Source: Octopus sinensis (taxonomy: Eukaryota). Taken from it: a stretch of DNA of 64,000 nt. This document shows positions 1-34,207 of this stretch, one piece after another; positions within the stretch are counted from its first letter, which is position 1; the number at the start of each line of letters is the position of its first letter. The position numbers were made by a program, and so were the translations under genes. The notes beneath the pieces were generated by a model. The model did no database searches. It saw only the letters and a list, made by a program, of their open reading frames with translations, and was not told the origin of the DNA. The stretch is taken from the NCBI RefSeq assembly GCF_006345805.1, contig NC_043015.1, forward strand, positions 15,314,001 to 15,378,000, read 5' to 3'.

Positions 1-15
1 ACTAACCCGTTCTCT

Positions 16-427
16 GGATCTTTTCGGTTTGAACGGCAGTTTTTAACATAATTTCTAGGTAACTAAAAAATTGTAAACTTCGTATACTGGTAGAATGTGT
101 TTATAAAACATCTTTTTCTCTTGGCTTTATTGAGAAAATTCTATTGTTTGTAAGATATTTGTTGTTATTTTTCTTCAATTTCTGCAATTTCAACCAATTA
201 CTGACGTCTATTGAGGTAAAAAAACAAACATTCTGTGCCGTATGAATATGTCCCTCGTTTAAGAAACAGATTGGGTTTATTTACATTTGTGAAGAAAAAA
301 AAGATACCCTTCCCCCCACCCCTAAAACAGATTGAAATGCAATAGATCGATACTAGGGTCATAATTATGGGTGACATTTTCATATGACACCGCTAGAAAA
401 AAACTGCCGTTCAAACGGAAAAGATCC
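16..427. mobile_element. MITE, 29-bp TIRs starting GGATC, 8-bp TSD (Merlin- or hAT-like)
   Basis: TIRs 16-44 and 399-427 (1 mismatch); TSD CGTTCTCT at 8-15 and 428-435. Confidence 0.85.
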
Positions 428-754
428 CGTTCTCTTAACATTACGGACCTTGTGCCAAAATAAGAAAGAATCTCCTTGGGGTGTCCAATGTAAATGGGGA
501 AAAGAAATTAGAACGTCTATTGGTAACACCATACATACAAAATGAAAACACTGAAGTTATTTCTTACAGAACTCGGCTTCATATTTAGAGTGGACATTAA
601 CTAGCCGATTGACCTACACAAATGTTAGAATGTAAATTACGGTTCGGCTTTAAAATGTAGGTTAAGGGGCACACCGACACAAGTGACCCCCCCCCATCTC
701 CCGCACCGAATTTGTTTCCTCAATACTTCCAGAGAAACGGATATTTTTTAAGGC

Positions 755-1147
755 AATTTTCTACAAATATGTTTCAGGTAGTGTAGATTCCGATTATATC
801 GGAATTTGTTGTGAAAACAAATTTTCCGTGGGTGTGGATTGGAGTATCAGAAAATTCACACGAGTTATCTTTGTTTCCCTATAACTTTTAGAAAAAAATG
901 GGTACATTTTTTTTAATGAAATTTCCTACAAATACCTTTGAGAGTGCATAGATTACGATTATCGGAATTTCATATGAAAAAATAAAACGGTGAACACGCA
1001 CACATAATATACTGATACATCACAATTCTGTTTTGAAATTTCAAGTTTCATTTTGTAGATATGTGATTTATTATTATTATTATTATTAAATTCCGATATA
1101 ATTAGAATCTATACACTCTGAAAGGTATTTGCTGAAAATTTCATTAA
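755..1147. repeat. Three diverged ~60-bp units (two direct, one inverted), probably a DNA-transposon remnant
   Basis: 755-818, 916-980 and reverse complement of 1088-1147 share CTACAAATA...GTGTAGATT...ATCGGAATTT. Confidence 0.6.
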
Positions 1148-1725
1148 GAAATACCCATTTTTCTGAAAGTTATGAGGAAACAAAGCTGACTCATGTGAAT
1201 ATTCCAAAAACCATCTCCCCACTCACAAAAAAATCTTTTTCACATCTGAAACGGATTTGTTGAAACAGAATGGGGCACATTTGTGTAGGTATGCCGATTA
1301 CAGGTAACTGTTGGTTTGCTTCGCAATAACAACAAAGTGAGCACTGTCAAATGTTGAAGTTTGACATATGCGAACACACTAATCATGTTGTTAACCCCAG
1401 ATAAAGTCTGATGAAGCAGATCCATAATCAGTAGCAGTCTAAACACGACCATCTCGTCTTATTGTCTTCCTTGACTGTAAAGTATCTAGATCTGCACTAT
1501 GCAGCGAATCCTTACATTTTATTAAAAAGTCCGTAAGGTATAATTTGAGGGAGATATGATTGCTATTTTTAAAAAAGTCGAACGGCTACATAGAAAAGTG
1601 GTTTAGATACCCAATTTATTCACAGCAAAAGACCTAATTTCGTTTAAATGAATTTTTCCTACGGACCCTAAGTTTACAACAAACACGTTTTCAGTTTCAT
1701 ATCTACATTGAAAGGTAAATGAATT

Positions 1726-1971
1726 GGTACTACAAGCGAACAGTGGTCCCGGTGTGCGCACTCGCGCATCTGCGCTAGCTAGTCGTAAGTAGTCGATCCT
1801 ACAACGACTTTTTAACCCTAAACCTAACCCTAATTTTTTAACCCTAACCCTAGTTTGTTTATAAAAATAATTTATTTACTTAGTTTTAAAAATTGTAGGA
1901 TCGACTACTTACGACTAGCTAGCGAGGATGCGCAAGTGCGCGCACCGGGACCACTGTTAGCTTGTAGTACC
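1726..1971. mobile_element. Merlin-like MITE with ~80-bp TIRs and internal (CCCTAA)-like repeats
   Basis: Begins GGTAC and ends GTACC; perfect TSD AATGAATT at 1718-1725 and 1972-1979. Confidence 0.85.
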
Positions 1972-3387
1972 AATGAATTATTAAAAACAATTAAGTAATA
2001 ATTATATATCATACACAGCAAACTTTTAAAATTTTGAACAGAGTGGCATAGCGCAAGGGGCACGGAATGTTTGTTGTAGTCGAAGGTATGTTACATTTAC
2101 GGCTGTGAGCAGGGCAGCCAAATCCCACTGCCCCACTTTTCAGGGGCCCGCAGACCCGCAACGTTAGGAACAGCTGACAAAGTGGTTCCTTTTTAGGCTC
2201 CAATAAAATAAGCGAACATTGGAAGAATGTGATAATATGACAATATAAAAAGAATAAAATTGGAGAATAAATTACTGTGAGAAATTACTCAGCTGATGAC
2301 ATAAGTGTGAAGGTTGTCTAATGTAAACAATAGAATCAAAGCGAAATGAGCAACTTCAACAGAGCTCAACAATGTGTTCACGGAGGAATAAAGTACATAG
2401 AATATGTAAACAATACTGAAACAAAAAGATCTGTCAATTTAGGCACTACTGTAATATTGCTGTGAAGAAAATATATTATAATAGGGTGGAAACCTACCAG
2501 ATGGAAGTGAGAAACTGTTCTGGAATCAGATCCCTCGGTAAAACTGAGGCAAATTTTACACTCGCCAAAGTGCCAGCTATGATCAACAGAAGGCTCCTTG
2601 CTCGAAAGTCGGCATTCATCATTGTTTCTTTCAGTCTCTGGAGCAGGGGTCAGACAACCGTGCACCCCAAGCTGACATATTCGACAGCGCCAAGACTCTA
2701 AATCCGAGTACTTATCGCGCTCAGGACAATACTTAACTAATACGAATACATCAATCGACTGCCCGATGTAAACAGATTTGAGCTGTTGATATGCGTCATC
2801 ATCAGTAGAAAACGGTTTGTTTTTATCGGACACAATTAGTTCTAATGACGATGCTTCGTCCACATTGTCTGCATGCTCTTCCATTCTTCCATGCAGCCCT
2901 AGTCGCAGGGTATAACTTTCCTCGAGCCTCGATTACAACATTTATCACATGAAGTCTTCATTCGAACTAATATACAAATTAAATTTTTGTTGAGACTCAC
3001 TATTCTGTGTTGATTTAAACCAGTTAGTACTTAGAACGTTGGATTTAATGCACCACGCTATTTGTTCCGACTCGCAGCGCTTTGAGTTCAAATCCTGACT
3101 CATCTTTTTTGATAAAGTATTGTCCAAGGTGATGGACTGGTTGAATGTTAGAACGTCGAAGTATATCTCTTGCAGTATCTGCTTCTGCCCAAGGGATTTC
3201 CGACTTCAAATCGCATCCAGGTCACCGAGAAAAAAGGCAGGGGTCTTGCGGGGCCCGGCAAAAACAGTGAGTCCTTATCAAAATGTTCGAGTAGTATTTT
3301 AACCGATCGCTTACCATCTTAACAACAAGAGTGCAAAACGACTTCAAGTCTTGCGTACTCAACGAACGTTACATACAAACGTTATAT

Positions 3388-3653
3388 CAGTTGTTCTCAA
3401 CTAGGGTCCTTAAGGTCCTTGGGTCCATAAGGTCCATATAACATTTTGTTGCTTACGTTTATGTGCAATAAACTGGATATATTTCTACAATACATAAAAT
3501 ATTTAAACATTTAAAAAAATACAATTTCTAATAATATTTAATCACAAAAATATAATAGGAATTTTAGACATCGAATGGCTATGAGGATATTCAGTTCCTC
3601 GAGTAAAATGGGAATTAAAGGGTCCATAGGCAAAAAATGATTGAGAACCTCTG
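3388..3653. mobile_element. hAT-type MITE (older)
   Basis: CAGTTGTTCTCAAC...TTGAGAACCTCTG termini; TSD degenerate. Confidence 0.65.
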
Positions 3654-4161
3654 CAATATATACATAATGACTTGTAGGGACACAGTATTTTCGTTATGCA
3701 ACCACAATACACTATAAAATATATTAAACGGTTTTATAAGTCAATACTGTTCTACTGTGTTAGCAGTGTGCTTTACAAAATATGTAACAGTCAGTGTCCA
3801 CGAGCCCGTGTCCTCGTAAAGCCGCGAAAAAGAAAGTGACAGTTCTGTTTATTTTTTTAATGACCAAAAATGCTCTTCCACAATGTAATTGTCAGTTTTA
3901 ACACACGGTCTCAGGCAAGTCTTTCGCCAAACGAGTACATCTCTGAAAAATAATTATTATAACATACTATCTATCAGAGATAACCTTCGAAAGATAATAT
4001 TGAATTAATATTTGCAAATTAATTGTGGTTAGAGTTCATATGATTTGAAATATTAAAACAAGGAACATAGAATGCAGATTCTTGGATTCGACAGTATTTG
4101 GAGTTAATTCTCTACTTCAATTTACTCTTCAAATAGAATTTTTTCTTTGGATGCTTTAGAG

Positions 4162-4307
4162 CAGTGGTTTCCAAACTGTGGTCCGCAAAGGTCGTACCGG
4201 GGTATGTGAACATGCTAAGCTGACAGACCTTTCAATATCCTGGGGTCTGTGGGAAAACTCATTTAAATAAAAGGGGTCCTTGGTAGTGAAAAGGTTGGGA
4301 ACCACTG
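4162..4307. mobile_element. hAT (Charlie-like) MITE
   Basis: CAGTGGTTTCCAAAC...GTTGGGAACCACTG; perfect 8-bp TSD CTTTAGAG. Confidence 0.88.
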
Positions 4308-4783
4308 CTTTAGAGTATAGGAAGAGAATTTTGTGAGTGTTTTCTAAATTATGATCGAATCTCGTTAGTGCTTATCAAACTAGTGGACCTTCAAATGCTT
4401 GCCATGTAGCAGACATGAAGATGAAGCCCCTGTGGATATTTTCAAATTTTCCGTCAATTTAAAAATGTAAAAAGACTTTCCATTTTAATTTGTTTAGGAG
4501 TGACAGGAAAGAATACTTGATTTTTTTTTATTGTCCATTATCTCGATTTATTCATGTGTTGCTACCAATTCATAATCTTATTGTACTTTTAGTAGAAAAA
4601 AGTTTGATAACTTGAAACAAATAATTGAAGCAAACAATAAATGATCTAAAAGATTATAATATATTTCTGTAATTTGTGACCTGATTAAGAAAATGAAGTG
4701 AATCAATATTACAAAACTGTTTTGCTGTTCGGCTCCGACCAGCTGGTCACATCATCTGTAGTTTAATACCATTTAAATGAAAA

Positions 4784-4819
4784 ATGGCGCATCTTTCGCT
4801 TAATCAATATCTGACCAAA
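4784..4819 (+). CDS. PCID2: PCID2 exon 1 ([12 protein letters not shown])
   Basis: AAAATGG start context; GTAAGA donor at 4820; matches PCID2 N-terminus MAHITINQYL. Confidence 0.93.
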
Positions 4820-7800
4820 GTAAGAAATTAGTCTTTTTTACTAATAAAATTATCTTTTAATGTCACCTATTTTAGTAGAAAACTATAAGCAAAATCATTA
4901 GATTATTTAGTATGATGACTATTTGAAATGGTTTTGTTTTTATGATTATAAACGCATTCGGCTTGAATCAACTCCCGTCTGATGTTTATATTTTACTACA
5001 AAATAAAACTTATTTTATAATTGCTAGTGTTTTTAGTTTGCATCCAATTTGTTAATTATGCGTTAACAAATGTAGTTTTCACTTCACAACATTAGAAATA
5101 TCTGAGAAAATATGAAAATCAGAATCATGTGATTTTTAAAACTGTTATTTAGACATTTTATAATTTATTGTAATTGGTTTGCAGGTCCAACATGCATTCC
5201 GAAACGGAGACGGATTAGCGGCGGCTGTAAGTATAAAAATTAACTTCTAACGATATCATTATATTTTATTTTAAGATTTAGTGTTGCTATCGTACATTGC
5301 AATATTGTCCAGATATTACTAAACTGCCTGGTTTAAACCAGTTTTCTGTGAAACACACTTATGGTCATGGGGAAATATTACTTTGCTAGTAAATAGGTGA
5401 GAGTTAGTGACAGGAACAGCTTCTGGCCACAGAAAGTCTGCTTCAACAAATTTAATTTAAACCATGGAAACGTTGACATTAAAATGATGATAGGAGTTAG
5501 GGACGTAATTCTCTTGCAAAGGTAAAATATGATATCGTAAATAACATTAACAACAATGCAACAACTTCACAATAAACGTAAAATAAGTCCATAATTTGTG
5601 AGATATTCTTATTTGGTTCGTAATTTTTCAACGTATTGTGTTTTGTCCATGGAAGTCGAAAGCAACCTAACATGAGAAAGGTCTGGTTAGAACATTTCAA
5701 TACTGTTATTCACAATAAACTAACATTTCATTCTGTTTTATTGAGGCTTAAACGACTGTTAGAATACTTGTGTTTGTATCATGATAAACAGACTGTTATT
5801 ACACCTTCACAATGATTGGTGATAAGAAAGATGTCCAGTTGTAAATATATCATGCAAAACATTTGTATGGAACGGAAAATATGTCAGCGAAGCCTACACA
5901 ATGTGTTGGTGCTTCATGAGGTAACGATTGAAATATATGGAAGACAAGTTTTTCCAGCTAAGACCTGCATGGCGATGCAGGTGTAATCTGATGATAATGA
6001 TGCTGGTTATCATAAAAGAACATTTTAATTACTGAGTAGCTGATTTGCGAAATAGCCCTTAACTAATTTACAGTACTCATAAAGATACTGCTGTCATTAA
6101 AAAATCAACATTTTTCTCTCTTCACCGAATCATAATTTTAACTCCACTTTTGCACATGTGAAATGGGCTTTATTTCATTGTTTTGGCAATTGCTATGAGT
6201 ATGTAGTACTCCCCCTGCTACATACCTTTCTCACTTAGGTATCAACACTTGGATGCCCTTTCTACTATTAACCACTCAACTAGGATGTTATGAGCGAAAC
6301 TAGATTTTTGTCAGTTTGGCAAACTGGGCCAAGCAGAGTTATGTGCCTTGCTGAAGGGTAAAGGGTTAGGACTTATATAATTTACGACCATGTCAATAAT
6401 GTTGTACCTTCGCCTCACAGCCACTGTACTTCTATGATATCGATAGTACCATCATAATTTTAAATACTAACCCAATGAACATATTCTGATTAGTTACTCT
6501 TTCTTCTTTACATATTTGTAAACCTTTTTTTTTTTACTTTCAGACGTTGTTTTCTTTCAAACATGCTCATGTTGCAAATAGACGTTTGCAGTTGGAGAAA
6601 CCAGAATCCGATTGTCAAAATTATTTTGACCCTCCATATGATGAATTAGTTGCAGCTCATCTCAAGTAGGTACTCTTTTATTCTTTTGATTTCAGTCATT
6701 GGACTGTGGCCATGCTGGGACACCGCTTGCTTATAAGTTGATCGATCATATCCACTCCAGTTCTTATTTATCAATCTTCATCTGTTGCCTGACCAAGTTA
6801 ATTAAAAAATTTTTTTAATAAGAAGGGACGCAACTCAATACACTGATAAACAAATACATATACTGGTGTGCATATAATACATACACACACGTGTGTGTGT
6901 ATATCATCATTGTTTTAACATCCACTTTTCCATACTTCTATGGGTCAGAGAGCTGTTAAGCCAAGATGATAGAAAAATTATTATGAACGCTAGGAAGACG
7001 AGCTTATGAGAGGAGACAGTATAAGCACCTTACCTTTAGGAAAGTAATGGGCAGAAAGATAGATTCTCTTTCATCACATGTCAGCGACGAAAGAGTCGAG
7101 GAGGAGGAGTGAGAGAGAGGGAATGGTGAAGAGGAGAGGAGAAGAATAGGGAAGAGTGGGAGAGAAAACCCAGAAAGGATGAAGAACAAGAGAGGGAGAG
7201 ATAGACAGAGAAGAGATAGAAGAGTGTGCATCGTAATTATTAAGATAAACAGAAATAGAAATTATAGGAAATATCTTAGAACATGAATTTATAGAAATAT
7301 TTTCAGACAGTCAAGCTTTTAATATTGCTTTCTTTTAGTACTTTTAGTAATTGTTACATACGTAATTAATAAGCAGCTTTCTCCATTATAGTACATACCC
7401 AGCCAAAAGTCATGCACCAAAACTTTTGACTTTTATGTTATTATTATTATTCATTTCAACCATCATGTACAAGTACATGTGCATTCTTTCATCATTATTT
7501 TATTTAATTTATTCAAATTTAGAAAAATTGTCTGACAATTCCGGACCCTATTGAACCTATTTTTTGTCTTGGGACATAACTTTTGGGATGCCCTTTGTGT
7601 GTGACATGTTTCTGTCTATCTAATTCTGTTCATAATACTTTGGTCAGTCGAATGCTACAGTACATGATACAGGCCCAAAGTACTATACTGTGAGAATGAA
7701 CACAGAACCACTTGATTGTGAAGTGTAGTTGTTAATCATATGGTTCTCTGTGTGTTTCTATAATGTTTATGACATAACTTATTCTTGATTAACAAAGAAA

Positions 7801-9420
7801 CGATTAAAAGAAAATTTGTATACATAAATATGAAATAACTGAATTTGTCTTTTGCATTTCAGATGTTGCTGGGCTGTTGCAAACAGTGACTTCTTAAGTG
7901 CTTATGGTTGCCAAGCACTGGTTGTCCAATATCCTTTGAAATATTAATTTATTCATTATATAAGCAATTGTTTATTGCTGTCCTGGCTATGATCATCTTG
8001 TATTTTCTCAGATTTATTTTATACTTTTATTGATTTCAGTCATTGGACTGTGGCCTTACTGGTATATCACCTGCAAGAGTTTATAAGTTGATCATATCCA
8101 CTTCAGTTCTTATTTAACAATCTTCATTTATTGATTGGCCAAGTTAATTTTTTTTTAGTAAGAGATGCAACTCAATACACTGAGAAAGACAAATACACAT
8201 ACCTCATCATCATCATCATCGCTTAATGTCAGTTTTTCATACTGGCATGGGTTGGACAGTTTAACTGAAGACTGGCAAGCCAGTAGGTTGCACTAGACTC
8301 CAATCTGATCTGGCAAGGTTTCTACAGTTGGATGCCCTTTCTGATGCCAACCACTCTGAGAGTGTAATGGGTGCTTTTTATGTGCCACCAGCACAGGAGC
8401 CAGTCGGCACTGGCATCAACCACATTTGGAAGGTGTTTTTTATGTGCCATCGGTACGGGAGCCAGTTGGGAGGCACTGGCATTGACTCCACTCTTGAATG
8501 GTGCTTATTATGTGCCACTAATACTGGTGCCAGTCAGACGGCACTGGCTTTGGTCATGACTACGGTTTCACTTGACACAACAGGTCTACTCAAGCACAGC
8601 ATGTTACCTGGCGATTTAAGGGTATTTTTAAATGGGCTGGTTATGTGACATTGGTATTGGCCACAGCTGCGATCTCACTTTACTTGCCAGGTCTTCCCAA
8701 TCACAGCGTATCTCCAAAGGTCTCGGTCTCTTGTCATTGCCTCTGTAAGGCCCAACATTTGGAGGTAGTGCTTCACCACCTCATCCCATGTCTTCCTGTG
8801 TCTACATCTTCCACAGGTTCCTTCCACTGTTAGGGTGTGACACTTCTTCACACAGCTGTCCTCATCCATATGCAGCACATGACCATACCAGCGCAGTCAT
8901 CTCTCTTGCATACCACATCTGATGCTGCTTATGTCTAATTTTTCTCTCAGGACTCTTACACTCTATCATGTATGTACACACACATATATATATATATGTT
9001 ATATTGAGGAGAAATCAAAACCAAGCCAGAACGAGTATCTTAAGTAATTTAGAATAATTCAATTAGGGTAACGTGAATTTGAAGTCTTACAGCTGTTTCT
9101 AGGATAATCCAAGTGGTTGGTTAGCATGTCCGTGCACTGGGTATTCCATCATCAAAGACCCAGTATATGGACATGCTAACCAACCACCTGGGTTATCCCA
9201 GAAACAGGTGTAAGACTTCAAATTCACCTTACTCTTATTAAATTATTCTAAATGACTTAAGCTGCTCATTCTAATATAATATATACATGCTATAACAGAA
9301 CCCTAACACAGATCCCTAGATCCAGCCGTAGTTGTGATCTTGGAACCTAATGGTTGACCAACTATACCACTTACCCAGTGTACCTATTCGTTTAGATCAC
9401 AAGTGAACTAAACTCCTCAT

Positions 9421-9467
<47 letters not shown>

Positions 9468-11749
9468 TTTTTAAGATAGTTGTATAGTTGTATCAATATG
9501 ATTTTTACTGCTATCAAGTTATGTAAATGTTTAGAAATCACATTATGATTTGTCCAGCTGTAGATTAGACAGTGGCCTTGTAAGATTAAAATCAGTCTTG
9601 AGCTAACTGCTTCTGTCATTTTTTAAAGCTATACATTTCACTGTATTTGTAAGTTGCAAGCAGCAAGATTATTGGCACAAATATTGAAGACAGCTGATTA
9701 TTCTGATATAGTAAATAGATGATGTTTAGTGATTGAGAAAGTAAAATAAGTTGGTAGTTATTGTTATATAGCTGTTGGTCAGCTGTGATTAAGACGGTCA
9801 ATGTTAAATAAGTAGTTGATTAAATGATTTGACATGATATATTTTATGATATTCATTGCCTCAAGGAAGAACATGCAATATGAAAGAACCTCGTTCTGGT
9901 TGTGTAACCTCCTGGAAGAGATGATTTTTGAACAAAAGACCCTAGATAATAAAAATTCTCATTATTTTCCCTCTGGGTGGTTATCAGTTTGGCTGTAACA
10001 GAGTAATGCATCATATATGCCTCTACAACCACAAATATACACAAAATTGCATCTTCTGATCCTTGGGTGCCATTAATAAAATTCATTTTGTTGCAAGCAT
10101 TCAGGCCTCATCTCCAGTTCTTCCCCACCACCTGGTTTTGGGTGCCTGAAGAGAAAGAATGAAATGGAATGTCAGTAGAATGTCATGGTTGGAAATAAAT
10201 GATATGAATGTATTAAATACAAGTGTCTGCATTAATGTTTTTGTTATTTGCATTCATGAGTTATTATTGTATGTGTGTGCTTCAGAAGGTAGTTGAGATA
10301 TAAAACAAATAAGGGTTTCACCTCCTGCTTTTTATATTTTTATACAATTAACTCTTAGACTTTGCATTTCTATAAAAAAAAAACAAAAAGGTGGAAATAC
10401 CTGCTATCATATATTGGATGAGTTTATTATATGATGTATGATTGCACACAGTTTTGAAGTCCCTGAATTAAAGTTAATTAAAGACACTTAACTGTTAAAG
10501 ACTGTTGATTGATGAATATAGATGATTAATGATACTTCATAACATTCAAGAAGACCCGTCCACTACAATGGAATTGACACTGGTGCTGGTGCCACATAAA
10601 TAGCATTCAGTATACTTTGTGGAGTGGTTGGCATTAGGAAGGGCATCCAAGTGTAGAAACCCTGCTAGAAAAGACAAAGGAGCTTATTTTGGCTCCTGGT
10701 CTAACCAGCTCCAATCAAACTGTCCGACTCGTGCCAACATGGAAAACAGACTTTAGATAATGATGCTGATTAGAGGTTATGATGATGATGATGATGATGA
10801 TGATGATAAGACTTAGCCAGCAGTCAAGGAATATGTGGATTAATTTCTATTGCTGTTTACCTTTTACTAGTTCTCATCAGATGTTATCATTTTTTTTTCT
10901 GCTTGTATAATTTCAGAAAAATTCTTAGCAATTACCACCTCAATATCACATGTCAAACATTTATTTATTTAGTGTTTTATTTCTTTTTTTTTTCTATGCT
11001 AATATTGACAGAATGATTTTGCATGCTATTGAAGTATGATGCTTTTATGAATTAAGTGGGGAACCTCTTGTTAGAATGACAGATGTAGTACTTGAATTTG
11101 TGACCACTGGGTCACTTTTCCATTCCGTTAACTTCATATCCATGAGTGTGCCCCTCCCAAAATACACACACAAGTACGCACAGATATGCAAACACACACA
11201 CAATGTGTGTGTATGTGTGTATATATATATGTATATATATACACCATAAATCCTCGAGTATAGTCCGCCCTTGAGTATAATACGCAGGGGATTTTTAGGG
11301 GGCTGTAATTCTGAAAAACCTAAACCTTGTGTATAATACGCACCTCTTCTCTAACTTGAGTCAAGGAGGTCTATATAACGTCCTTGGTTTGTAAAACTAT
11401 ACGGTAACGTCCTTTATTATTATTGTACATATAACATAATGCAAACGTGTAGCTTTTTTGTGCATTTTGTTTGCAGAAAATAAAGAAATAACAGTAATAA
11501 CGTTTAATAAATGTTGCTTCTGCAAATTATGGATGATTCTTATATGACTTCATTGCTTTCAGGCTTAGCTTAAGGTATTTTCACGCCGACATCACAAAAT
11601 GCGTTTGAATAAACATTGCCGGACAGCAAATAGAGACTCGAACATTGCTTTGAAAATAATTTTCATTTTTAACCTCGTATATAATATGCATTAGGGATTT
11701 TGACCTTTAAATTTTGGGAAAAAAGTGCGGATTATACTCGAGGATTTAC

Positions 11750-11791
<42 letters not shown>

Positions 11792-14700
11792 TGCACTCAC
11801 GCATGCACATGTGGTAGCTAAATAGTTGAATGATCTCCCTTGCAAGAAAGATTATAGAGTAACCTCCCTTCCTAAGTTTTTTTAAGCATCTGTGTCATGA
11901 GACGTGATTCTTAATTATTCAAGAAGCTTAGTATTTCTCTTGGAAGTTTCTAGAATGACTAGCATTCCATTAATAAAAACAGCTTGCTAACCCTGCTCTT
12001 CGCTTCTTAGTTGATTAGACTTAGGGTCATTTACGTCATTTCTATGTCCGTCTATTTCTCTACACCACATGACTGAAAGCCACCACTTAGCTGTTATTTC
12101 TACATTTTCTATCTCTGAACTTTCTTGCATAGATTACTTCATTCAACTAGATTCTACATAATGATTCTATGTATCATCATCGTTAGTAAATAAGATATAT
12201 TTTTATGTAGTAAATATATAATTCTTGAATTTATTCTTCATCTCTATATGAATTCTTGTAATCATATACACGCAACCACATCAACACCTATATATAACCA
12301 CTGCGCACACACACACACAAAAAGTGAGTCAAGTATAAATAGATTTTTTAGCTCCTGTTTATTGTTATGTGTAGCATTCATTTATTGTACTGTGTATTAA
12401 TTACTTCATTGGCTGCAACAGTTTATACTTAACCTTCCACATAGCTTGCACCAAAGCTCTACAAAGCCAGAAAGATGAGAATTGGTTTCTTCCAGTAATG
12501 TTTGAAGTTTGTTTAGACCTTCGACGTTTTGCAATCCGAGTAAGTTTTCTTTGTACTTAATTCAAATCTGACAATGGAATAGTTTTTCATTTGTGAAGAA
12601 TGGATTGGTGATAACATCATCATCATTTAATGTCTGCCCTCCATGCTAGCATGGGTGGAAATGACTTCTTGTAATTGTGTCTTTATCTGGATGTTTCCTT
12701 TCACAAGATCCTTTTCAATATTTATAGTTTGTAGGTATAAACTATGGGACTGATTGTATGCATATATTCCAACATCAGGTAGTTCTGCCTGCCAAGGCTC
12801 AACTTGAGCTGTGCCACATCATCTGTGTTTATACAACACTGTCTCTCTCTATCTATCATAGTTTTGTTTATGTCTGTCTCGACACTAATTGGTTATACCA
12901 TATCATTGACTTTATACATTATAACAGTGATTGATTATATACAAATACCAATGTTGCAGTCTTTGGTCATAGGTGACTGGGATATTTTAAAGCAATTGAA
13001 GCGGGGGAAAATAGCCCCAAAAAACTAGGAATATCCTAAGAAACTCAAACAGATTTTTTTTTTGAGTGACTTGAATTACATTTAACCCTTTAACATTGAG
13101 GTTACTCTGTCAAATGCAATGCTTATTTATTTGCATTGTGTTGAATTAAGCATGCATTATCTCATATCTTTGTAATTTCAAGGATGTAGTTGTTTATTTT
13201 TAGAATGATATTGTTGGGTAGATTTGAGATGCCAGATCTGACCAGTTTGAACATAAAACAGGTTGGGTGTTTAGGCCAGATTGTAATGCTGACTGTATCC
13301 CTGTTCTTGAAGGCATAGCTGTATGAATAATAGTTTAATCCTGCAACATGACACTTGTCTTCTACTATAAATCAAGTGTACCAATGCTCTGAGAGAAAAA
13401 TTTGTTTGACTGGATCCCTATCATAAAGACATGCACATTTAATTATATAGTCAAAGGACATGTTTCATTTTTTCTAAAATTGAATAAAATAAATAAAATT
13501 ATGATGAATACAAACATACTGTACATAATGAATAATAATATAAATAAAATGTCAAATGTTTTGGTGCATGGCTTTTAGCCCACCCGTTATATCTATCACT
13601 GATCTATATTAACAAAAGATGTAAAACATCAGTGGAGAAAGTGTTTTTAAATATAAATTCTTTCTGTGATATGTGTCTTGGATCTAATTGCAAAGACAAC
13701 CTGTTGCTAATTTTCTTGTCAGTGAACTTGTAATTGACCTGTAACTATTGATGTTATTGTTTTAACTAACTACCATATTAAATATAATTAATAATAAATT
13801 AATGGTGATCATTTTTAAAGTAATTTTGAAAAAAAAAAATAGTGAAAAACTAGAGATGTCTGAAACTCAAACATTGAAGATTTATTTGTAAAAGTTTTAT
13901 TATTTTCTAGGCTGATGCTCAGACAGTAAGGAGAGGCAAAGGTCGAAGTGGTGAAAAGTTAGAGAAAGCAGCTGACCTACTGATGGGCTGTTTCCGAGTG
14001 TGTGCCAGTGATAGGTATGTCTTTCCATGAAACTAGCTTTCAATTGATTCATTTGACATTTCATAGTCTCACAGTACTTTTAAGGTTTTCAAAGTTTGTT
14101 CAAAGAATTCATTCTTGTGTGTGAAAATTTAGTGTCAACATTAACTATTAAGTACTAAACAAACCAATGAAAGAGCTTCTTTGTGGTCTTTCAGTCTGCT
14201 AGAAATAGCAACCAAAATCTCTTTCAAATCACACACTTGTACTGCCTAAAAGCAAGGACACATTAGATAATGTCTGGAGTAGAAAATATTAAAAAAAGTG
14301 ATAGTTATGGCAGAAATGTCTTTGATTACAGTTTCACCTGATCCAGGTAAGGTTAAATTACAACCAAGTATTCCTCAATATTTCATTTATTCATTGTAAC
14401 ATTTCTGAGTTGTAGTTTCTCTTTTCTTATCTCTTCAGTTGTCAATTAAGGCAGCAGAGCAGGTACTTTTTGCTTTCTGGCATCAACGCAAAACCAAACT
14501 TGTGATTTGTTTCTGCTAGAATGTTGCTCTGGACACCTCTGAGACTAGAACTCTCCTTCCAAATGCTCACTCATTCAACCCCTAGTTTTAGTTGGAATAT
14601 TTCATTGATGATTTAAAAGAAACAACCCAACACTTTATTTTTAAATATCACATAGAACTTATAATGTAAATTTAGCTTATGTTGCTAAACACACACGTGA

Positions 14701-15730
14701 TGTAAATTTAGCAGTCATATAAATCTTCATTAAAAAGGCTTAGAACATTCATGATACATATATATTGCTTATCTTAATTATTATTTAATTGTTAATATTG
14801 TTTATTTTATTAAGACAGCGAGCTGCCAGAATTGTTAGCACGCCAGGCAAAATGCTTAGTGATATTTTGTCCACCTTTACGTTCTGAGTGTAAATTCTGC
14901 CATGATTCATGATTGACTTTGCCTTTTGTTCTTTCGGGGTTCATAAAATAAGTACCAATTAAACACTGGGGTTGATGTAATCGATTCTCCCCCTCCCCTG
15001 CACATGCTGGCTTTGTGTCAAAATTTGAAACCAATATTGTTTATTTCGTTATGTTAATTAGTCGAGCTGCAACAGAAGATTCCAAGAAATGGGGCATGCT
15101 GAATTTAGTGAACCAATTATTCAAAATTTATTTTAAGGTAAAATGGATTTGTTTCTGTATATTTGCTTTTTATATTTATTGTCTTGAATTAATGTTGAAT
15201 GTCTTGTATTTGTGTCTGTTTGTTTTTCATCAATTTATCTTTTATTGCATGTTTTAAAAATGGTCTGGAGTTCTTCACTAATAATTGTTCAAGGGTGTAA
15301 CTTTCCAATCTTCTACTATTATTACTTACTATGATCTAAGCAACTACAGTTATAATATAATTGAACATTTAACAATATTATGGTTGGTAATACTAATGCT
15401 TAATGATGAATCAGTAGTTTCTCTAGGCCCAGTCCCACTGTGTGGCACCTTGGGCAAGTGTCTTCTAAATTAGTCCCCAGGTTGACTAAAGTTTTGCAAG
15501 TGGATTCGGTTGACAGAAACTGAAAGAAACAAGCACCCACTACACTCACGGAGTGGTTGGCATTAGGAAGGGCATCCAGCTGTAGAAACATTGCCAGATA
15601 AGACTGGAGCCTGGTGCAGCCACTGGCTTCCCAGATCCCCGGTCGAACCGTCCAACCCATGCAACCATGGAGAACGGATGTTAAACGATGATGATGATGA
15701 TGATATATATATGTATATATATGTATATGT

Positions 15731-15778
<48 letters not shown>

Positions 15779-15902
15779 ATGTATATATATGTATATGTAT
15801 GTATATGTATATATATGTATATGTATGTATATGTATATATATGTATATATATGTATGTATATGTATATATGTATATATATTATGTATATATATATATATA
15901 TG

Positions 15903-15951
<49 letters not shown>

Positions 15952-15996
15952 GTATGTATATGTATATATATGTATGTGTATATATGTATATATATG

Positions 15997-16041
<45 letters not shown>

Positions 16042-16564
16042 ATGTATATATATGTATATATATGATTATATATATTATGTATATATATATGTATATGTAT
16101 ATATATGTATATATATGATTATATATATATATGTATATATGTATGTGTATGTATATATATGTATATATATGATTATATATATATGTATATATGTATGTGT
16201 ATGTATATATATGTATATATATGATTATATATATATATGTATGTGTATGTATATATATGTATATATATGATTATATGTATATATGTATATATATGTATGT
16301 GTATGTATATATATGTATATATATGATTATATATATATATGTATATATGTATATATATGTATAATATGTATATATATATGTATATATATGATTATATATA
16401 TATGTATATATGTATATATATATATGTATGTATATAATATATATGTATATGTATATATATATGTATATATTATATGTATGTATATATATATATGTATATA
16501 TATGTATATATATATATATATGATTATATATATATATGTATATATGTATATATATATATGTATG

Positions 16565-16617
<53 letters not shown>

Positions 16618-19600
16618 GTATATATATATGTATGTATATATATGTATATATATGTATATATATGTATATATATATATGTATATATATGTCACTCGCTTCC
16701 ACAGGCTTAGCCAATACACAGGATGAAAAATATCAGCTAAGTCCTGTTCCTCTTTTCATTGTTTTTGCAAGTATCATCATCACCATCAAGCCTTCTTATT
16801 ATTATTGTTTCCCCATATATTAGCGTTATCGTTGTCTTTTGTCTCAAATGCTAGCTGAAGCATATAAACTTTCACTCACAAAAACTTATTCACACGACCG
16901 CAAAAACATCTCGCCTCAAATCTGGTCTTTCTTTCTGTCGCTTAATTCTCTAACCCATCTTTTCCCAACTTCCACTCATAGAAACTTATGCACACGATCG
17001 CAAAGCATTCCATCTCAAATCCTGTCTTTCTTTCTGCCGCCTAAATCTCATCTTCTCCCAGTGCGCGGTGCGCGCGCCCTCCCACCCCCACCACCAATAC
17101 CGGTGAACACTGTTCTCACCATCTACACCGGATACTGCAGTTACCATGGAGAAAAAAATACTCTTTTATGGAAAAAAGGTGTAAAAACATAATATCTGTC
17201 CAGTGCTGCTCCTTGTCAGATTCCCAGATATGATTCCAGCTCTGTAGCTGTTATCAATATGGGAAATACCAAAGTGAGGCAGCTCTGGACAGACTTAAAA
17301 CCACAACTTTAACAACATTGACTAAGTTGTACCATTAGACAGTAGCTATTGATATATATATCTGTGTATGTATCTTTGCGTCTGTGTTTGTCCCCCACTA
17401 TTGCCTGGCAACTGGTGTTGGTGTGTTTTCTTCCCCATAACTTAGCAGTTCAGCAACAGAGACTGATTGAATAAGTACCAGGATTAAAAAAAAATCTACT
17501 AGGCTCGATTTATTCAACTAAAATATTCTTCAAGGTGGTGCTCCAGCATGGCCACAGTCTAATAACTGAAACAATTAAAGGGTAAAAACTAGTGCACTGT
17601 ACACCAGTTGTTTCATTAAAATGCATGTGTCTTTTTCACAAGTTGTAAGTTAGAGTTAGAAAGATAGATACAACATCCAGCTCTAAAAGTATTTCTCTCT
17701 ATTTTCATGTATGTAAGTTACAAAGACCAATTGGATATGGTATCAGCTTCTTAGTTGAAAATGTTTTAAATGAATTACTTATCAGTGGCACTGAACTCTC
17801 TTAAATGTTACTGTTTAATAGCAGAGCATAAGAGTATATAAGTTAGTGAGAGATCATCTAACTGGTTGGAAGGTAACTTGTTGTTTGGTAGCCTACATTT
17901 TTCAGAATGAATGGATCTTTAATTTTGGGGTTTATTGTTACATTGGTTAAGTATGGCTGTGTGGTTAAGAAACTTGCTTTCCAGTTATATGGTCTTGGGT
18001 TCAGTCCCACTGTATGACATTTGGACAAGTGTTTTCTACTAAAATCTGTAGTGTATTTATATATATATATATATTATATAAAGGATTGTGGGTAAGGTCA
18101 GAACAATGCGAAGTAAATGCAAGGCAAATCCCAAGAAAACATATATGAATTAATGTAGACTTACTTTGCATTCAATATTTCGGGGTTATGACCCCATTTT
18201 CAAGAAACTGATGAATGTTGCCAATGTGTGTGTGGAGTGGACATGCATGGAAAGGTGTTGCTATAGCAGCCAGCTAGCTTCCTGTAACTCTCTTCTGTTG
18301 TTGATATTTGGTTTTCTTTGGTGTATGAGGATAGCCTCAGAGATTCTATGTTGCCCCCGCTGTGTTGGCCTGTGAATTCCTGGATCTTGCATTTCCGTAG
18401 ATGTTTCTTCATGGGAGTGTCTGTCTGCATGTGTTCCTTAATCCGTATATGCTGTTTTCTTGTTGTGCTTCCTATGTAGGATGCACTACATTTGCCACAG
18501 ATGATCTCATATACAACATAGGTCCTCTGGCACAATTCAGGGTCATTCATGAGGCAATTCGACAATGTGCCCTCCTCGGAGTAGTAAGAGGTGTTGTTCT
18601 TGGACAGAGCTTTTCTTGGGGAAGCCGGTGTCCATTGTCTCTATGTTGAGTCCTTCCTTGTGGACTGCATGTTGTATCGCTGTAGTAGTTCTGTCGTCAA
18701 AATGAGGTAGCTTTAGGAAGCATGTGCCAGACTTAGGAGTATGATGGTTCTTCCGGGGTTTATTGACCCTGATGTTTTTTAGGTGCTGTTGTTTGGCTAA
18801 AAATGGTGGGTAGCCATTCAGGGTTAGGTCACTGAAGAACTGTTTGGTGTTGACGGCTTTGTCAGTCATTTCGCTGCAATTGTTGTTTTTACATGCAATC
18901 TTGTTTCTCATGTATGCGGCTTTGGTGGGTAAGGCTGATTGGTAGTGGACTGAAAGTTTTCTGCTAGTGGAAAACTTTTTGTCCACATGGTTCTGGGTTC
19001 AATCTCACTGTGTGACATCTTGGACAAGTGTCTTCTACTATAGCCTAAGGCTGATCAAAGCCTTGTGAGTGGATTTGGTAGACAGAAACTGAAAGAAGCC
19101 TGTCCTATATATATATATATGTATGTATAGATTTGTGTGTGTGTGTTTCTGTTTTGTCCCCCAACCAATGCTGGAGTGTTTATGTCTCCGTAACTTAGCA
19201 GCTTAGCAAAAGAGGCTGATAGAATAAGTACTAGGCTTACAAAGTATAAGTTCTGGGGCGATGTCTTTGACTAAAACCCTTTAAGGTGGTGCTTCAGCAT
19301 GGCTAGAGTCAAATGACTGAAACAAGTAAAAGAATATATATATATGTATATTTATGTGTGTTTGTGTGTACCCTTGTCTAGACATCACATGATGGTTGTA
19401 AATGAGCATCAGTCAAACAAGCAAGGCTGTTTGTTTCCAGTTTGCTGTGAAAATTATGTCTAACTATTGGAAAATATCTTATTTGGCAAAAGGTGAGAGT
19501 TGGTGACAAGAAGTGCATGTGGCTGTTGGAAATCTGCCTTAACAGATTCCATCCAGTCCATGCAAGCATAGAAAAGTGGGCATTAAATGATGATGGTCGT

Positions 19601-22600
19601 CAGTCATATGTGTTAATCAAATTGTTGGAATTACTTTTTTAATTTGGACCATAATTTAAACTTAGAAACTGTTTGGAATTCAAACCATCTATTAAGTTCT
19701 TCTCTCTACTTTATAGTAATTTTTTTTTTTTTTGCTTTCAGATCAATAAACTTCATCTTTGTAAACCTCTCATACGAGCTATTGACAGTTCCCCATTAAA
19801 AGAAAAATTCAGTCTTTCTCAACTTGTGACATACAGGTAAATATGTTGTGTAGTTTAATAATCCTTCTACTATGTTAAAACATTTGGTTCTCATTCCTTT
19901 TCTTTATATGTCTAATACAACAAAATAGAATATGATTTGGAGAATAGCAATGATCTGCTGCTTATTTTCTAACAACTCGAAGGAGAGATTGGATTGAGAA
20001 GAGTTAAATTAGTTATGAATTATTGGTATTAAACACTATCTGCAAGGGAAGTGTGGTTAGAATTGTTGATTAGAAATTAATTAAATATAGAACTCTAAGT
20101 AAGGACTCAAACTAGGGAATGTCTATGAGATGAATCCTGGTATGTGACTGTTACTTATTTTATTGATCCTGGAAAGCTGAAAAAGCAAACAAAATGGACC
20201 TGGATGGGATTCAATATACATAACGTGAGGAGTTGTAACTAAATACTACAAGGTATTTTGTCCTACACTATTGTTTCTGCCAATTTTAATGTTAAATATT
20301 ACTGTAAGCTTTTCTTAATCATTACCATCATGATGATGATGTGTCAGTTTTCCTATGTGGGGATAAATTTAATTCATTAATATTGATGAACTTATTTGAA
20401 TACATGTGTATAACTCTTACTTGTACAAATATATGGAAAATAATTGTGAGTGGATACTATTAAGAAGATAAAATTATTAAGCAGAGCTGAGTGGTGATTA
20501 AAAATCAATAAAGTATATAACATTTGCTGAAGAGATAAATCTACAAATAAATCTGCTGTGAGACCTTATATCTGTCTGTCTAATAACTTATATAATCTTG
20601 TCTAGTTAAAATGATTTTAAATTTTTCCTTTCCATTTCTTACTAGGTTTTTTGTGGGTCGAAAAGCAATGTTTGACAGTGACTTTAAAGCAGGTGAGATC
20701 ACTCTAAATAACATGCTTGTACAATACTTCCTTTGTAAGAGTAAGAGTTTGTAGTTTAGTGATATTTATTGAAGGTGGGTTCACTGTTTCATATGTTTAC
20801 AGAGAAAGACAACAGTATCTCTGGAACATGGCTGCTTCTCCAGTTTAACTGTTTTCTGACACTCAAACCACAAAATGAAAATTAAAAAAGAAACAAATCC
20901 ATTGTTATACTTATTCATTTTCACCACTTACCACTAGTAATTTGTAGGTGGTTTACCAATAGTTTTGCTTACTTTATTAGAATTTATATACTTCAATTTA
21001 TATACTTCTGTGTTAAAAATCAATGACTTCAATACTTTTTTTAACATTTTAAAGCATTTTAACTAAAACTTGAAATCTTATTTTTACCATTTATTAATAT
21101 TGTGACTTTGATTATGATGATATAATATCATCAGCAACATTTTAATACCGATTTCCATGCTTACACAGGTTGAACTGGTTTGCCATACAACATATTCCTA
21201 ATTCTTTTGATATTTCATCAGCTTATCTTTGAAGCCCAACATCCTGAGAACTTTAAAAAAAATTTGTCTTGGGGGTCAGTTTGTTCAATTGAACCCCTCA
21301 CAGTAGTGTCCCAGCATGACTGCATTCCAGTGACTGAAACAAATAAAAACAAAGATAAAAGATTATCTTTTTCCACTGATCCTTGATCCTTTTATTTTCT
21401 TATACAAAGTCATTAATGCTCTAACCTATGCCGAGGAATGCATTCCTTGCCAGTCAGTGTTTTAGTGATCTAATTATGGATAGCAAATCATGATCTGCTT
21501 GCTTATGAGCCTTAATTCTCTGCAATGTTTATATCGTAGACCTCATAGAACTGGGACTTTTCCTCTTCTGTCAATCCTGCTTGAGGAGCATTTATTCTAA
21601 ATCTACTTAATCCTTTCTATTTTTGTTCCCCTATCTATTTCTTTTCTGATTAGACTATATCTATACTACATATTTACAACTCCTACATTTACCAGCAAGC
21701 TTTTATTTAGAAGTTAGTACTATATTTTTGTGATAGTAATCAATATTGCTTTGTAATTAGTATTGCTTATATTCTATGTTTCTAGCTGAAGAATACCTTA
21801 CATTTGCCTTTGAGAGATGTCATAAAGAAAGCAGAGGCAACAAACGTTTGATTCTTATTTATTTGCTTCCAGTGAAAATGTTGTTGGTAAGTTAACTACT
21901 TTGTATTTTGATAAATAAATGGGAAATGTTTTGTGTTTTGAAATATTTGAACTGTTTAAGTTAAAGAAACACAGAAAAGCAAACGCTTTTTAAAATGAGG
22001 ATGAAAACAATAAAAAGATAAGAGTTATTCCATTTCCATGATTGAAACAAGTAAAAGAATAAATAGATACCTGCTTTAGACTGTGTCTTAGCTGTCATAA
22101 AAATGTTTTCTGCCGTGTGATAAGAGGCTTACTTCCCAACCACGGAAGAAGTGTATGGACTGCATTAGGGACTGTGTGGAAAAATAAACTTCATTTGTTC
22201 ACATTCCATGAGAATATTTTTGTCAGCCTGTGAACTTTTCAGCTGGCCCACATAATTGAGAAAAATATTTAGAGTAGGTGTTTATAAGCCATTTAAGAAA
22301 CACACAAAATCCGTTAGATTCACTTCAACATTTAAATTTAATTTGTCAAAATATTTTCATTGCTTTGAGGCTGTAACCTGTTCACTGACTAAATTCCATG
22401 CTGCATCTGATTTTGTCAGTGAACAGATCGCAGTCTCAAAGCAATGAAAATATTTTGATAAATTAAATTTAATTGTTGTTTAGAGTAGATTCTTTGGTAA
22501 TATGTTAGAAGATACAATGAACTGTCAGATACTGATTGTTGGTGTGAATTTAACTGACCTTTATTTGGTTGTTGAGTTGGATGTTGGTATGTGTAGAGGC

Positions 22601-25600
22601 AGTAGCATCATGCTAGAGATTAAAAGCACTAAGTTCATTGTGGGTCTTGAAGTTTGTGAAGAGTTGGGAAGAGTCTGTTACTGATCAAGGCTAAAATGTA
22701 TTTTGCTCCCTGAAGAGGAAGTTCAATCTCTGGGGTACAGATTAAGTTATATGATGCAGATGAGATCCCAGTGATGGTCTCATTTGTAGAAATTTTGAAG
22801 ACTTTAGTTGTATGTTATTCATATGTAGAGAGGCTGTAGTTACAACTCTGTTTTCTTAAAATGTATAGCAATTGTATCTTTGTGTAATTAAATGCCACTT
22901 AGTTGTCTTGTCCCCATTGAGGACATCTAATCCATGCTTATGTTTGTATACATTGTATTTCCCCAGGGTTATATGCCTAAACGTGATGTTTTGGAACGAT
23001 ATGATTTGTTACAGTTTTCTGATGTAGCCAAAGCAGTGAGGTAAGTATTTAGCTTTTACTGTTAAAGAAGAGTAAAACCAATTTTTGTGGGGTGGAGTGT
23101 ATCCAACTGAGATTAACTCAATTTAATACTGATACTTAATCTATTAAGATTACAGAGATGCAAAACTAAGTTAAACCTGGCAGAATTTAAATTCAGACCA
23201 TAGAGTAGTGAAACTAAATATATTTGGTATTTGGCTCAGTACACCATTTCACTGCTACCCTATAATATCTACATTATTTATATGTAAGACTGTAAAACAG
23301 GTTTTCTTGTCTAGCTCCTTGTGAACTAAATGAATTGGATTGTTGGAGAATTAGCAGATGAAGAAATACATTAGATGAGGCATCTTTTTTTTTCTGAAAA
23401 AAAATCATTTGCATCATTTTGAAAGTAACAATTGGAACAGAAGTGCGAATAAAATTGCATTGAAGTAAAAAAGTAAACATATTGTTAATTTGGGATCATT
23501 ATCATCATCATTTAGCGTCTGCTTTCCATGTTGGCATGGGTTGGACAGTTTGACTGAAACTGGTAAGCTGGAGAGTTACAACAAGTTCCGGTCTGATTTA
23601 GCATGGTTTCTATGGCTGGACACCCTTCCCAACACCAACCACTCCAAGAGTGTAATGTGTCACCAGCATGGGTGCCAGTTACATGACACTGGTATCAGCC
23701 ACAACTATGATTTCATTTTATATTTTATATTTTTTTGTCTGGTATGTAATCAAAAAGAATTGGTACCATTATCTGCAAAAGAAATTTATATATTAGAAAA
23801 TTTACGTTCCAATTAGTTACACAAACATAAAACTAAACCCTAAGATAACACATTAAAGTTTAAATTAATCTGCTCATCTCTTATCATTTTGAACAGTTCT
23901 GCTAATTGTTTAAAATTCTACTAAATCTACTTACTAAACTGAGGTTGTAAATGTTCTTTTGTTTTGTTTCATAGTTCTGGAAATCTTTTACTTCTTAATG
24001 AAGCACTGCTACAGAATGAAGCCTTTTTTATTAAATGTGGAATTTATCTAATTTTGGAGAAACTCAAAATCATAACCTACCGTAATCTTTTCAAAAAAGT
24101 GTAAGTACATATTCACAAAAACCTTTCAGTTAATAGAAAATAAAATCATTCATTTTTTTATGTTAAAACGTGATTAACTTTTATATGAATGATGAACTGA
24201 ATACTCTTTGTTATAACCTGTTTAATTATTTATACTTGTATAAATTGTTTGATAATTTGTTTGCTTTTAAAGTAGATTGTGAGTTCAAATAATTGTTTAA
24301 TTCATAACAACTCTTTCATTGTCTGTTAGAAATACTTCCAACTACTGTAATTCCCATCATCCAACATGAAGTACCAAAAATGGTTCCATGTTTCTATCTA
24401 GTTTGTTTGCTTGATTGATTATAACTTAAGTGTCCACCTTGATTTTTCAGAAACAACTGAATATAGTTGAGGTCCTTTTATATTTATTAATCACTAATTA
24501 AGTAAAAAATAAAAATTTTATTTTGCTTGTTAAACTCCTCAAGCTGATCCCAATGGCAAGGAAATTAAAAAATGATTGGAGCTTAAGCAGATGCTGCAGC
24601 CATCATCTACCTTCACAACCTTTGAGTAATGATACTCCCTTTCTCTGTTTGTTCCACTGTTGAGGCCTTGGGTAACGATGGATTGCACTTAGTGTGGAGC
24701 CTCTACCACAAGGATTAAACTGTTTCGGAACTAAATACTGACAAATCAAATGTGATATACAGTGTTTGCATGAGCAGCTTCCACGCACAGTTTATTTTCA
24801 TTGACATTCTTATTGATACTCTTTGAAATTCTTTAATTACATTCCTCAAACTGTTGTTATATGTAATTCTGTTTTCCATTTCAGTTATTTGATCCAAAAA
24901 AGTCACCAGCTTCCTATTGAATCATTCACTACTGTTCTGAAATTTATGCAGGTCTGTCTAAAATCTCTTATGTAACTAAACTATTATACGTATCTTCCTG
25001 ATCTATATTAGTGTGTAAAGTGGTGAGTGACAGTAAATGGAGTGTTGAGGGATGAGAGTTGGTGGATGACAGGGAGTGCAGCGGCCTTAGTGCCAATGCT
25101 TAAAACATTATTATTATTATTATTATTATACTTCTCAGAGCTCTTGGTCTTACTTGCTCTGGTTCATTCTGTGAAAGTGGATCGCAGCCTGTTGTCAGGG
25201 GTCTCACAGGCTCTCTTTCCACAAGCTGTAAGCTTTTGTACTTGTAATTATTATTATTATCATTAAGGCAGTGAGTTGGCAGAATCACTTGCATGTTGGG
25301 TGAAGTGCTTAGCAGTATTTTGCCCATTGTTACATTCTGAGTTCAAATTCTGCTGAGGTTGACTTTGCCTTTCATCCTTTCGGGGTCAATAAATTAAGTA
25401 CCAGTGAAACGTTGGGGTTGCTGTAATCGACTAGTCCCCTTCCCCAAAATTTCAGGCCTTGTGCCTTTATTAGAAAAGATTATTATTAAGGCAGCAAGCT
25501 GGCAGAATTGTTAGCATGCTGGGCAAAATGGCTTAGTGGTGTTTCATCTGTCTTTACATTCTGAATTCAAATTCCACTGAGGTCCACACTGCCTTTCATC

Positions 25601-34012: not shown

Positions 34013-34207
34013 TATACAGGGTGGGTGCTGAAAGAAAATACAGGAGGATCTGTTATGATTTTATTCAACATATTCCCTTCCCAGATTTACTCACTTATTG
34101 CAGCAGTCCTTCAGTTTTTCTAGCCCTGTGGAAGAACTTGGAAGGTTGGGCTTCCAACCAGGCTTTTGTTATATCCTTAAAGCAAGGAACTTTTCAGCAA
34201 CCCTTGT
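34013..34207. mobile_element. mariner-derived MITE
   Basis: Reverse-orientation homolog of 45237-45450. Confidence 0.7.

Follow-up and report, generated by a model that had tools for sequence, protein, structure and literature searches.

Intron 4 of the PCID2 gene of Octopus sinensis, contained in a window of 64,000 nucleotides (nt) of contig NC_043015.1 (assembly GCF_006345805.1, positions 15,314,001 to 15,378,000 of the forward strand), is very probably an ancient bilaterian intron of the U12 type in which T has replaced C as the final base, leaving AT-AT as its terminal dinucleotides. Positions are given from the first base of this window. The original prediction, made from the letters of the window, had offered two readings of this intron, and the first of them, a natural AT-AT intron of the U12 class, was well supported: AT stands at the same spacing in four cephalopod assemblies, the other orthologues are of the AT-AC type, and the product recorded in RefSeq is the AT-spliced one.

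The exons of PCID2 were located by tblastn, for which a human PCID2 sequence served as a guide only, and the splice sites were then set by hand. GT-AG termini with pyrimidine-rich acceptors were found in 13 of the 14 introns, intron 4 being the sole exception. When this intron is spliced at its terminal AT, the product of 399 amino acids is 100% identical to RefSeq XP_029648114.1 ('PCI domain-containing protein 2 [Octopus sinensis]'), and the gene range recorded for this protein, 26,611 nt, is equal to the rebuilt span from ATG to stop. The name of XP_029648114.1 carries no 'LOW QUALITY PROTEIN' flag. In the NCBI pipeline, a model without this tag has not been repaired by editing of the genome sequence, and the RefSeq model should therefore implicitly contain the non-canonical intron 4. 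At the DNA level, all 4514 nt of the intron matched O. sinensis assembly GCA_006345805.1 with 100% identity, and identity with the O. vulgaris sequence was about 97%.

Every sequence statement of the original prediction concerning the donor, the branch motif CTTAAC (12428-12433) and the positions of the neighbouring AC, AT and AG dinucleotides held on re-reading. Exon 4 ends on GTC CA, in alignment with the human, Haliotis and Lottia ...C-Q-x-x-V-Q, and is directly followed by ATATCCTTT, a perfect match to the U12-type 5' splice site /RTATCCTTT. Close to the other end, the box TACTTAAC agrees with 7 of the 8 bases of the branch-point consensus TCCTTAAC, and the presumed branch A is 12432 or 12431, giving a distance of 10 or 11 nt to the end of the intron. 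At this end the sequence reads TATACTTAAC-CTTCC-AC-AT-AG-CTTGC, with CTTCC at 12434-12438. On a qualitative reading, the last 32 nt of the intron, GGCTGCAACAGTTTATACTTAACCTTCCACAT, hold no T/C run of the kind that precedes every other PCID2 acceptor. The features of the U12 class found in intron 4 were consequently the 5' splice site, a branch box near the 3' end, a missing polypyrimidine tract and orthologous U12 introns; its AT-AT termini differ from the canonical pairs AT-AC and GT-AG, which are typical of the class and do not define it. Natural non-canonical pairs are indeed known among U12 introns, for which the termini are not a defining property (PMC3584512, PMC1557818).

The donor motif as such was present in the window at chance level: the 9-mer ATATCCTT(T) had 2 matches for 1.1 expected, and RTATCCTT had 4 for 6.8 expected. 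It derives its meaning from lying at the edge of an exon and from being conserved in orthologues. The other ATATCCTT(T) matches, at 34171 and 46886, were dismissed because of their lack of exon context, their location in AT-rich non-coding DNA and this chance-level count. An Rfam scan of the window gave no match.

Computed products confirmed the claim that, among the three dinucleotides at the intron end, only AT yields a full-length protein. Splicing after AT (12442) gives CAA GCT TGC, in frame. Splicing after AC (12440) gives CAA TAG, an immediate stop with a product of 89 amino acids, and splicing after AG (12444) causes a frameshift with a product of 99 amino acids. With either AC or AG, the stop falls in the fifth of the 15 exons and precedes the last exon junction by more than 50 nt. 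Distances from branch A 12432 had been estimated at about 8 nt for AC and about 10 nt for AT; they were measured as 8 and 10 nt, with 12 nt for AG. Restoration of a canonical intron end by A-to-I RNA editing was rejected, as a terminal U cannot become C by editing.

The comparison of the intron end with other cephalopods and molluscs, put forward together with the original prediction, was performed on the orthologous loci of eight species; both intron ends were read, the 3' ends in ungapped alignment. The donor ...CA/ATATCCTT was present in all eight, always between the second and third bases of one and the same Gln codon, and the O. sinensis branch box aligned without gaps with CCTTAAC, CCTTGAC or TCTTAAC of the orthologues. 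AT-AT introns were found in four cephalopods, with 3' ends reading CTTAACCTTCCACAT/AG in O. sinensis, CTTAACCTTCCAAAT/AG in both O. vulgaris and O. bimaculoides, and CCTTAACCAAAATTAT/GG in the cuttlefish Acanthosepion pharaonis (the genome of which reads ...TTAT/GGCATGC). The intron was AT-AC in Argonauta hians (CCTTAACCCTCCATAC/AG), Haliotis cracherodii (CCTTGACCTATGACAC/AG), Lottia gigantea (TCTTAACCCCACCCTAC/AA) and Xenopus laevis (TCTTAACACTTATCAC/AT). The final base of the intron is thus T in the four cephalopods with AT-AT termini and C in the four other species, and the A before it does not vary. Counted from the second A of the branch box, the intron ends at a distance of 10 nt in seven species and of 11 nt in Lottia.

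Because the orthologous intron of four species interrupts the same codon in the same phase and has AT-AC termini, PCID2 intron 4 is, judging from these alignments, an old bilaterian AT-AC U12 intron in which the terminal C has become T. With its AT-AC counterparts it shares codon position and phase (CA/N of Gln), the ATATCCTT donor, the branch box and the 10-11 nt spacing; the differences are the last base, C in the counterparts versus T in Octopus, and the length, 0.24-1.8 kb versus 3.5-4.8 kb in Octopus. Given the AC of Argonauta, a single change in the coleoid ancestor that was later reversed is as parsimonious as two independent C-to-T changes.

Transcript evidence came from decapodiform relatives. 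Twenty cephalopod PCID2 transcript contigs were on record, none of them from Octopus; 19 encode an in-frame product and one is shifted by an additional AT. The junction was read in 15 of them and was productive in 14. In Sepia esculenta, ten Logan RNA-seq contigs (10 of the 14 on record) all read GTTGTCCA/AGCATGC, the productive junction; SRR23936175, which is among the runs of these contigs, has been identified as S. esculenta (PMC10442824). Four contigs from a second decapodiform, whose protein shares 94% identity with its S. esculenta counterpart, read GTCCA/GAACTGC, again the productive junction. Since the base after CA is G in this species, the 5' cut falls directly before ATATCC, if the universal donor is present there.

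The shifted contig, SRR27666072_16938 (decapodiform, from the same project), reads GTCCA-AT-GAACTGC at the junction of exons 4 and 5, at about positions 282-300, which results in CAA TGA. Leading adapter bases aside, it is otherwise base-for-base equal over 1639 nt to the productive contig L018, and it was the only full-length PCID2 contig recovered from run SRR27666072. This suggests a real isoform with 2 additional nt and a possible slip of 2 nt at the junction. The additional AT could be explained by an acceptor shifted 2 nt upstream, by a donor shifted 2 nt downstream (AT/ATCC) or by a polymorphism.

Further searches added little. An exact look-up of the predicted products of 89 and 99 amino acids (O. 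sinensis and O. bimaculoides) gave no match, which is uninformative as there are no Octopus PCID2 transcripts in the collection. A metagenome scan for the three possible spliced junctions gave no match either, and a protein search with an N-terminal query of 143 amino acids returned distant short fragments only and no further cephalopods.

Several points weigh against the reading of intron 4 as a U12-type AT-AT intron. The junction of O. sinensis itself is deduced from frame logic, the RefSeq product and the relatives, and the decapodiform evidence is composite: the cDNAs display the homologous productive junction and the A. pharaonis genome the AT end, so that cDNA and genome are from different species. 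Dependence on the minor spliceosome is likewise predicted from motifs and orthology. Moreover, the junction is ambiguous by 1 nt in Octopus, as 7929 and 12443 are both A and introns AT...AT and TA...TA lead to the same mRNA; this ambiguity would be settled towards AT...AT by the decapodiform cDNA, which reads GTCCA/G, on the assumption that this species has the donor of all eight genomes. Finally, at 12 nt from branch A the AG is nearer the published optimum than the AT at 10 nt, and some AG use is possible. This optimum is 11-13 nt between branch point and 3' splice site in U12 introns, the 3' splice site choice of which is error-prone (PMC3584512). Splicing of U12 introns with non-canonical termini is supported, often with lower efficiency (PMC3584512, Turunen et al. 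2013).

Under the proposed explanation, the 5' splice site ATATCCTTT and the branch box TACTTAAC would recruit the U11/U12 di-snRNP (a particle of two small nuclear ribonucleoproteins). The 3' cleavage site would then be set mainly by the fixed distance of 10-11 nt from branch A and by the invariant penultimate A, the last base being less important. Use of the AT would yield the 399-residue protein, and the C-to-T change would be tolerated. Occasional use of a neighbouring site would place a stop in exon 5 and probably expose the transcript to nonsense-mediated mRNA decay (NMD). The invariant A and the constant spacing across the eight species match a site choice by distance and penultimate A. 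In the experiments of Dietrich et al. of 2001, introns starting with A reportedly accepted any 3'-terminal base, C being the best and U the worst; the penultimate A is said to have been essential, and spacings below 10 nt or above 20 nt to have activated other sites, with about 12 nt preferred. The PCID2 intron may be regarded as a natural experiment on U12 3' splice site choice, with AT-AC in a frog, two gastropods and Argonauta as opposed to AT-AT in Octopus and a cuttlefish, and the constant spacing together with the invariant A fits a choice governed by distance over the identity of the last base.

The second reading offered by the original prediction was an acceptor switch staggered by 2 nt that might tune PCID2 via NMD. 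In its fuller form, a weak AT acceptor with other usable sites 2 nt away would act as a regulated splice switch, a 2-nt shift leading to a premature stop, NMD and tuning of PCID2 output, for instance according to the activity of the minor spliceosome. The shifted decapodiform contig, otherwise identical to a productive one, speaks for it, as do the location of the O. sinensis stops, which are NMD-competent by the usual 50-nt rule, and the error-prone 3' splice site choice of U12 introns (PMC3584512). The likeness to such errors lies in a shift of a few nt and an out-of-frame product; the difference is that the additional AT was seen once, in a non-Octopus species, and may come from the donor or the acceptor side. 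No alternative site is conserved, however. The AC at 12439-12440 occurs in O. sinensis only: position 12440 is A in O. vulgaris and O. bimaculoides (both reading AA there) and T in Argonauta. Over the final 32 intron nt, this C versus A is all that separates O. sinensis from O. vulgaris (O. bimaculoides has two more differences, further upstream), and the C could have arisen by recent substitution, reflect a polymorphism or be a miscalled base of the one O. sinensis assembly. The AC is also nearer to branch A than the 3' site of any orthologue. As for the AG, it belongs to the coding sequence; it also follows the AC of Argonauta and Haliotis, but with other codons it is lost, the bases being GG in Acanthosepion, AA in Lottia and AT in Xenopus. 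Neither the AC 2 nt upstream, apparently a recent O. sinensis substitution, nor the coding AG 2 nt downstream is, as far as these comparisons tell, part of a conserved regulatory device. Since the shifted junction amounts to just one of the 20 contigs and its additional AT is equally explicable by a donor shift or a polymorphism, a regulated switch is unlikely. The claim is unsupported as a conserved design; low-level slippage is possible, of which the decapodiform transcript gives a hint.

A more far-reaching variant would be that the coleoid C-to-T change left PCID2 with a weak acceptor, that the 2-nt slip is frequent under some conditions and that PCID2 thereby senses the fidelity of the minor spliceosome via NMD. 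This is a speculation to which we give slightly less credit still than to the switch. If it were true, the output of PCID2, a TREX-2 mRNA-export factor, would be throttled by minor-spliceosome fidelity.

Another explanation would be that productive mRNA arises by a different route, either an AT-AC intron 7928/12452 with a protein of 396 amino acids or a cryptic GT-AG pair of the U2 type that deletes part of exon 4 or 5. All frame-preserving GT-AG, GC-AG and AT-AC pairs within about 45-60 nt of both ends of intron 4 were enumerated. Such pairs do exist, for example 7928/12452 (AT-AC) and 7906/12445 (GT-AG), but every one of them removes or alters residues conserved from molluscs to Xenopus (VVQ-A/S/T-F/C-T/L-K), and the cDNAs of Sepia esculenta and the second decapodiform retain these codons. 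With the true donor, there are two in-frame AT-AC options. That of 7928/12434, an intron ending on the AC (12432-12433) of the CTTAAC branch box, was rejected because it cannot be a real 3' site. The AC used in 7928/12452 lies within exon 5, 19 nt from branch A and hence well beyond the optimum of 11-13 nt (PMC3584512), and is unused in the RefSeq products too. The GT donors lie within conserved coding sequence and have a poor consensus. A different route is accordingly very improbable.

The least tenable alternative, and one that the original prediction had named as fatal to its own reading, is a 2-nt assembly or sequencing error hiding an ordinary AT-AC intron. ACAT might conceivably consist of AC and a spurious AT, whose removal puts AC directly before AGCTTGC and restores the frame in O. 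sinensis, and the sole source of the window was the O. sinensis assembly. Such an error is nevertheless effectively excluded, as the AT is also present in three other independent assemblies, two of which (O. vulgaris and O. bimaculoides) read CCAAAT/AG without any AC and would be left with an AA end by deletion of AT, as the 10-nt spacing from branch to intron end equals that of the AT-AC orthologues only with the AT kept, and as the RefSeq product bears no flag for a correction.

Introns of the AT-AT type are a known phenomenon. Sheth et al. in 2006 (PMC1557818) reported six in human and six in mouse, including those of human ERCC5 and IK and of mouse Gpaa1, Zc3hdc6 and Slc9a8, together with several switches between AT-AC and AT-AT from one species to the other, and noted that AT-AT introns are often mis-mapped. 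A survey of genomes that included O. sinensis found 701 AT-AT introns, or 0.95% of conserved animal minor introns, and showed that most non-canonical termini are one substitution from a canonical pair (Larue & Roy 2023, PMC10639083). Calling AT-AT termini rare, as had been done for this intron, is therefore fair but not to be overread, since they form the second commonest non-canonical class of animal minor introns (PMC10639083). The mammalian AT-AT introns share with that of octopus a U12 5' splice site and branch box, a 3'-terminal change from C to T, AT-AC orthologues in related species, a switch of subtype by a single substitution and frequent errors in automatic annotation. They differ in belonging to other genes and another phylum; besides, the octopus AT is common to at least three Octopus species and a cuttlefish, with AC in Argonauta. 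Vertebrate PCID2 has been listed as a host of a U12/U2 twintron (PMC3564746). No mention of PCID2 together with cephalopod minor introns was found in the literature searched, where the PCID2 instance and its cephalopod distribution appear to be undescribed. The PCID2 case leaves knowledge of minor splicing unchanged.

The main practical effect of the AT-AT end is that automatic gene annotation breaks. In the O. vulgaris annotation, PCID2 is split in two: CAI9736506 (94 amino acids) reads through the donor and ends in ...VVQYPLKY, and CAI9736505 (292 amino acids) has its first residue at a Met within exon 5. In the A. pharaonis model, translation runs on into the intron as YPF, and the protein is shorter by 17 residues. 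In an early model of O. bimaculoides, the residues of exons 2 and 4 are absent and the intron end is translated as NLYLTFQI. The only correct models were the NCBI ones of 399 amino acids, namely those of RefSeq for O. sinensis and O. bimaculoides and that of GenBank for Argonauta hians.

Coordinates of PCID2, of the elements of its intron 4 and of other features in the window. Minus signs in brackets denote copies on the minus strand.
Feature	Position	Strand	Remarks
PCID2 coding region, ATG to stop	4784-31394	+	CSN12-like, PCI domain; 15 exons, tblastn guide and manual splice model
PCID2 exons 1-5	4784-4819, 5185-5226, 6544-6665, 7863-7928, 12443-12539	+	
PCID2 exons 6-10	13911-14014, 15062-15137, 19742-19836, 20646-20692, 21786-21886	+	
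PCID2 exons 11-15	22967-23040, 23975-24100, 24885-24951, 29353-29409, 31305-31394	+	
Exon 4	7863-7928	+	66 nt; ends ...GGTTGTCCA at 7928, after second base of Gln codon
Intron 4, U12-type	7929-12442	+	4514 nt; AT-AT termini
U12-type 5' splice site	7929-7937	+	
U12-type branch-point box	12426-12433	+	
Upstream AC	12439-12440	+	use adds AT to the mRNA
AT	12441-12442	+	productive 3' terminal dinucleotide
AG	12443-12444	+	first two bases of exon 5: third base of Gln codon and first base of Ala codon GCT
Exon 5	12443-12539	+	97 nt; A GCT TGC ACC ... ATC CGA, then GTAAGT donor
AC inside exon 5	12450-12451	+	in-frame AT-AC alternative; QACT replaced by H
TRAPPC14-like gene	1-4700	-	e.g. open reading frame (ORF) 2378-2884
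SINE-like repeat, eight copies	6690, 8034, 17550(-), 19301(-), 41542(-), 57936, 58342, 60062(-)		
Second dispersed repeat	15015-15037, 29304-29326 (also at 35048 and 48284)		
Microsatellite (TATATATATG)n / (AT)n	15703-16687		about 1 kb; PCID2 intron 7
(TA)n runs	9425, 11752		inside intron 4
(ATG)n run	10779		inside intron 4
Endonuclease/LINE-like ORF	35348-35929	+	putative transposon remnant
Mariner-type transposase N-terminus	43202-43618	+	putative transposon remnant

Upstream of PCID2, in head-to-head orientation, lies a TRAPPC14-like gene. At the matching place of the O. vulgaris and O. bimaculoides loci, a product of 599 amino acids with TRAPP14_N and TRAPP14_C domains was found. Downstream of PCID2, two putative transposon remnants were recognized by eye: an ORF resembling those of long interspersed nuclear elements (LINE) and the N-terminus of a mariner-type transposase.

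Dispersed repeats were also observed in the window. One of them, resembling a short interspersed nuclear element (SINE), has the core TTTCAGTCATTGGACTGTGGCC, for which no copy was expected by chance; two perfect copies are located just inside PCID2 introns 3 and 4. Intron 4 further contains runs of (TA)n and (ATG)n, the former shorter than the microsatellite of intron 7. Copies of the second dispersed repeat, GTGCCAAAATTTGAAATCAATAT, stop about 25 nt short of the exon 7 and exon 14 acceptors; as these insertions adjoin the acceptors, they may contribute to the 3' splice regions of both exons.

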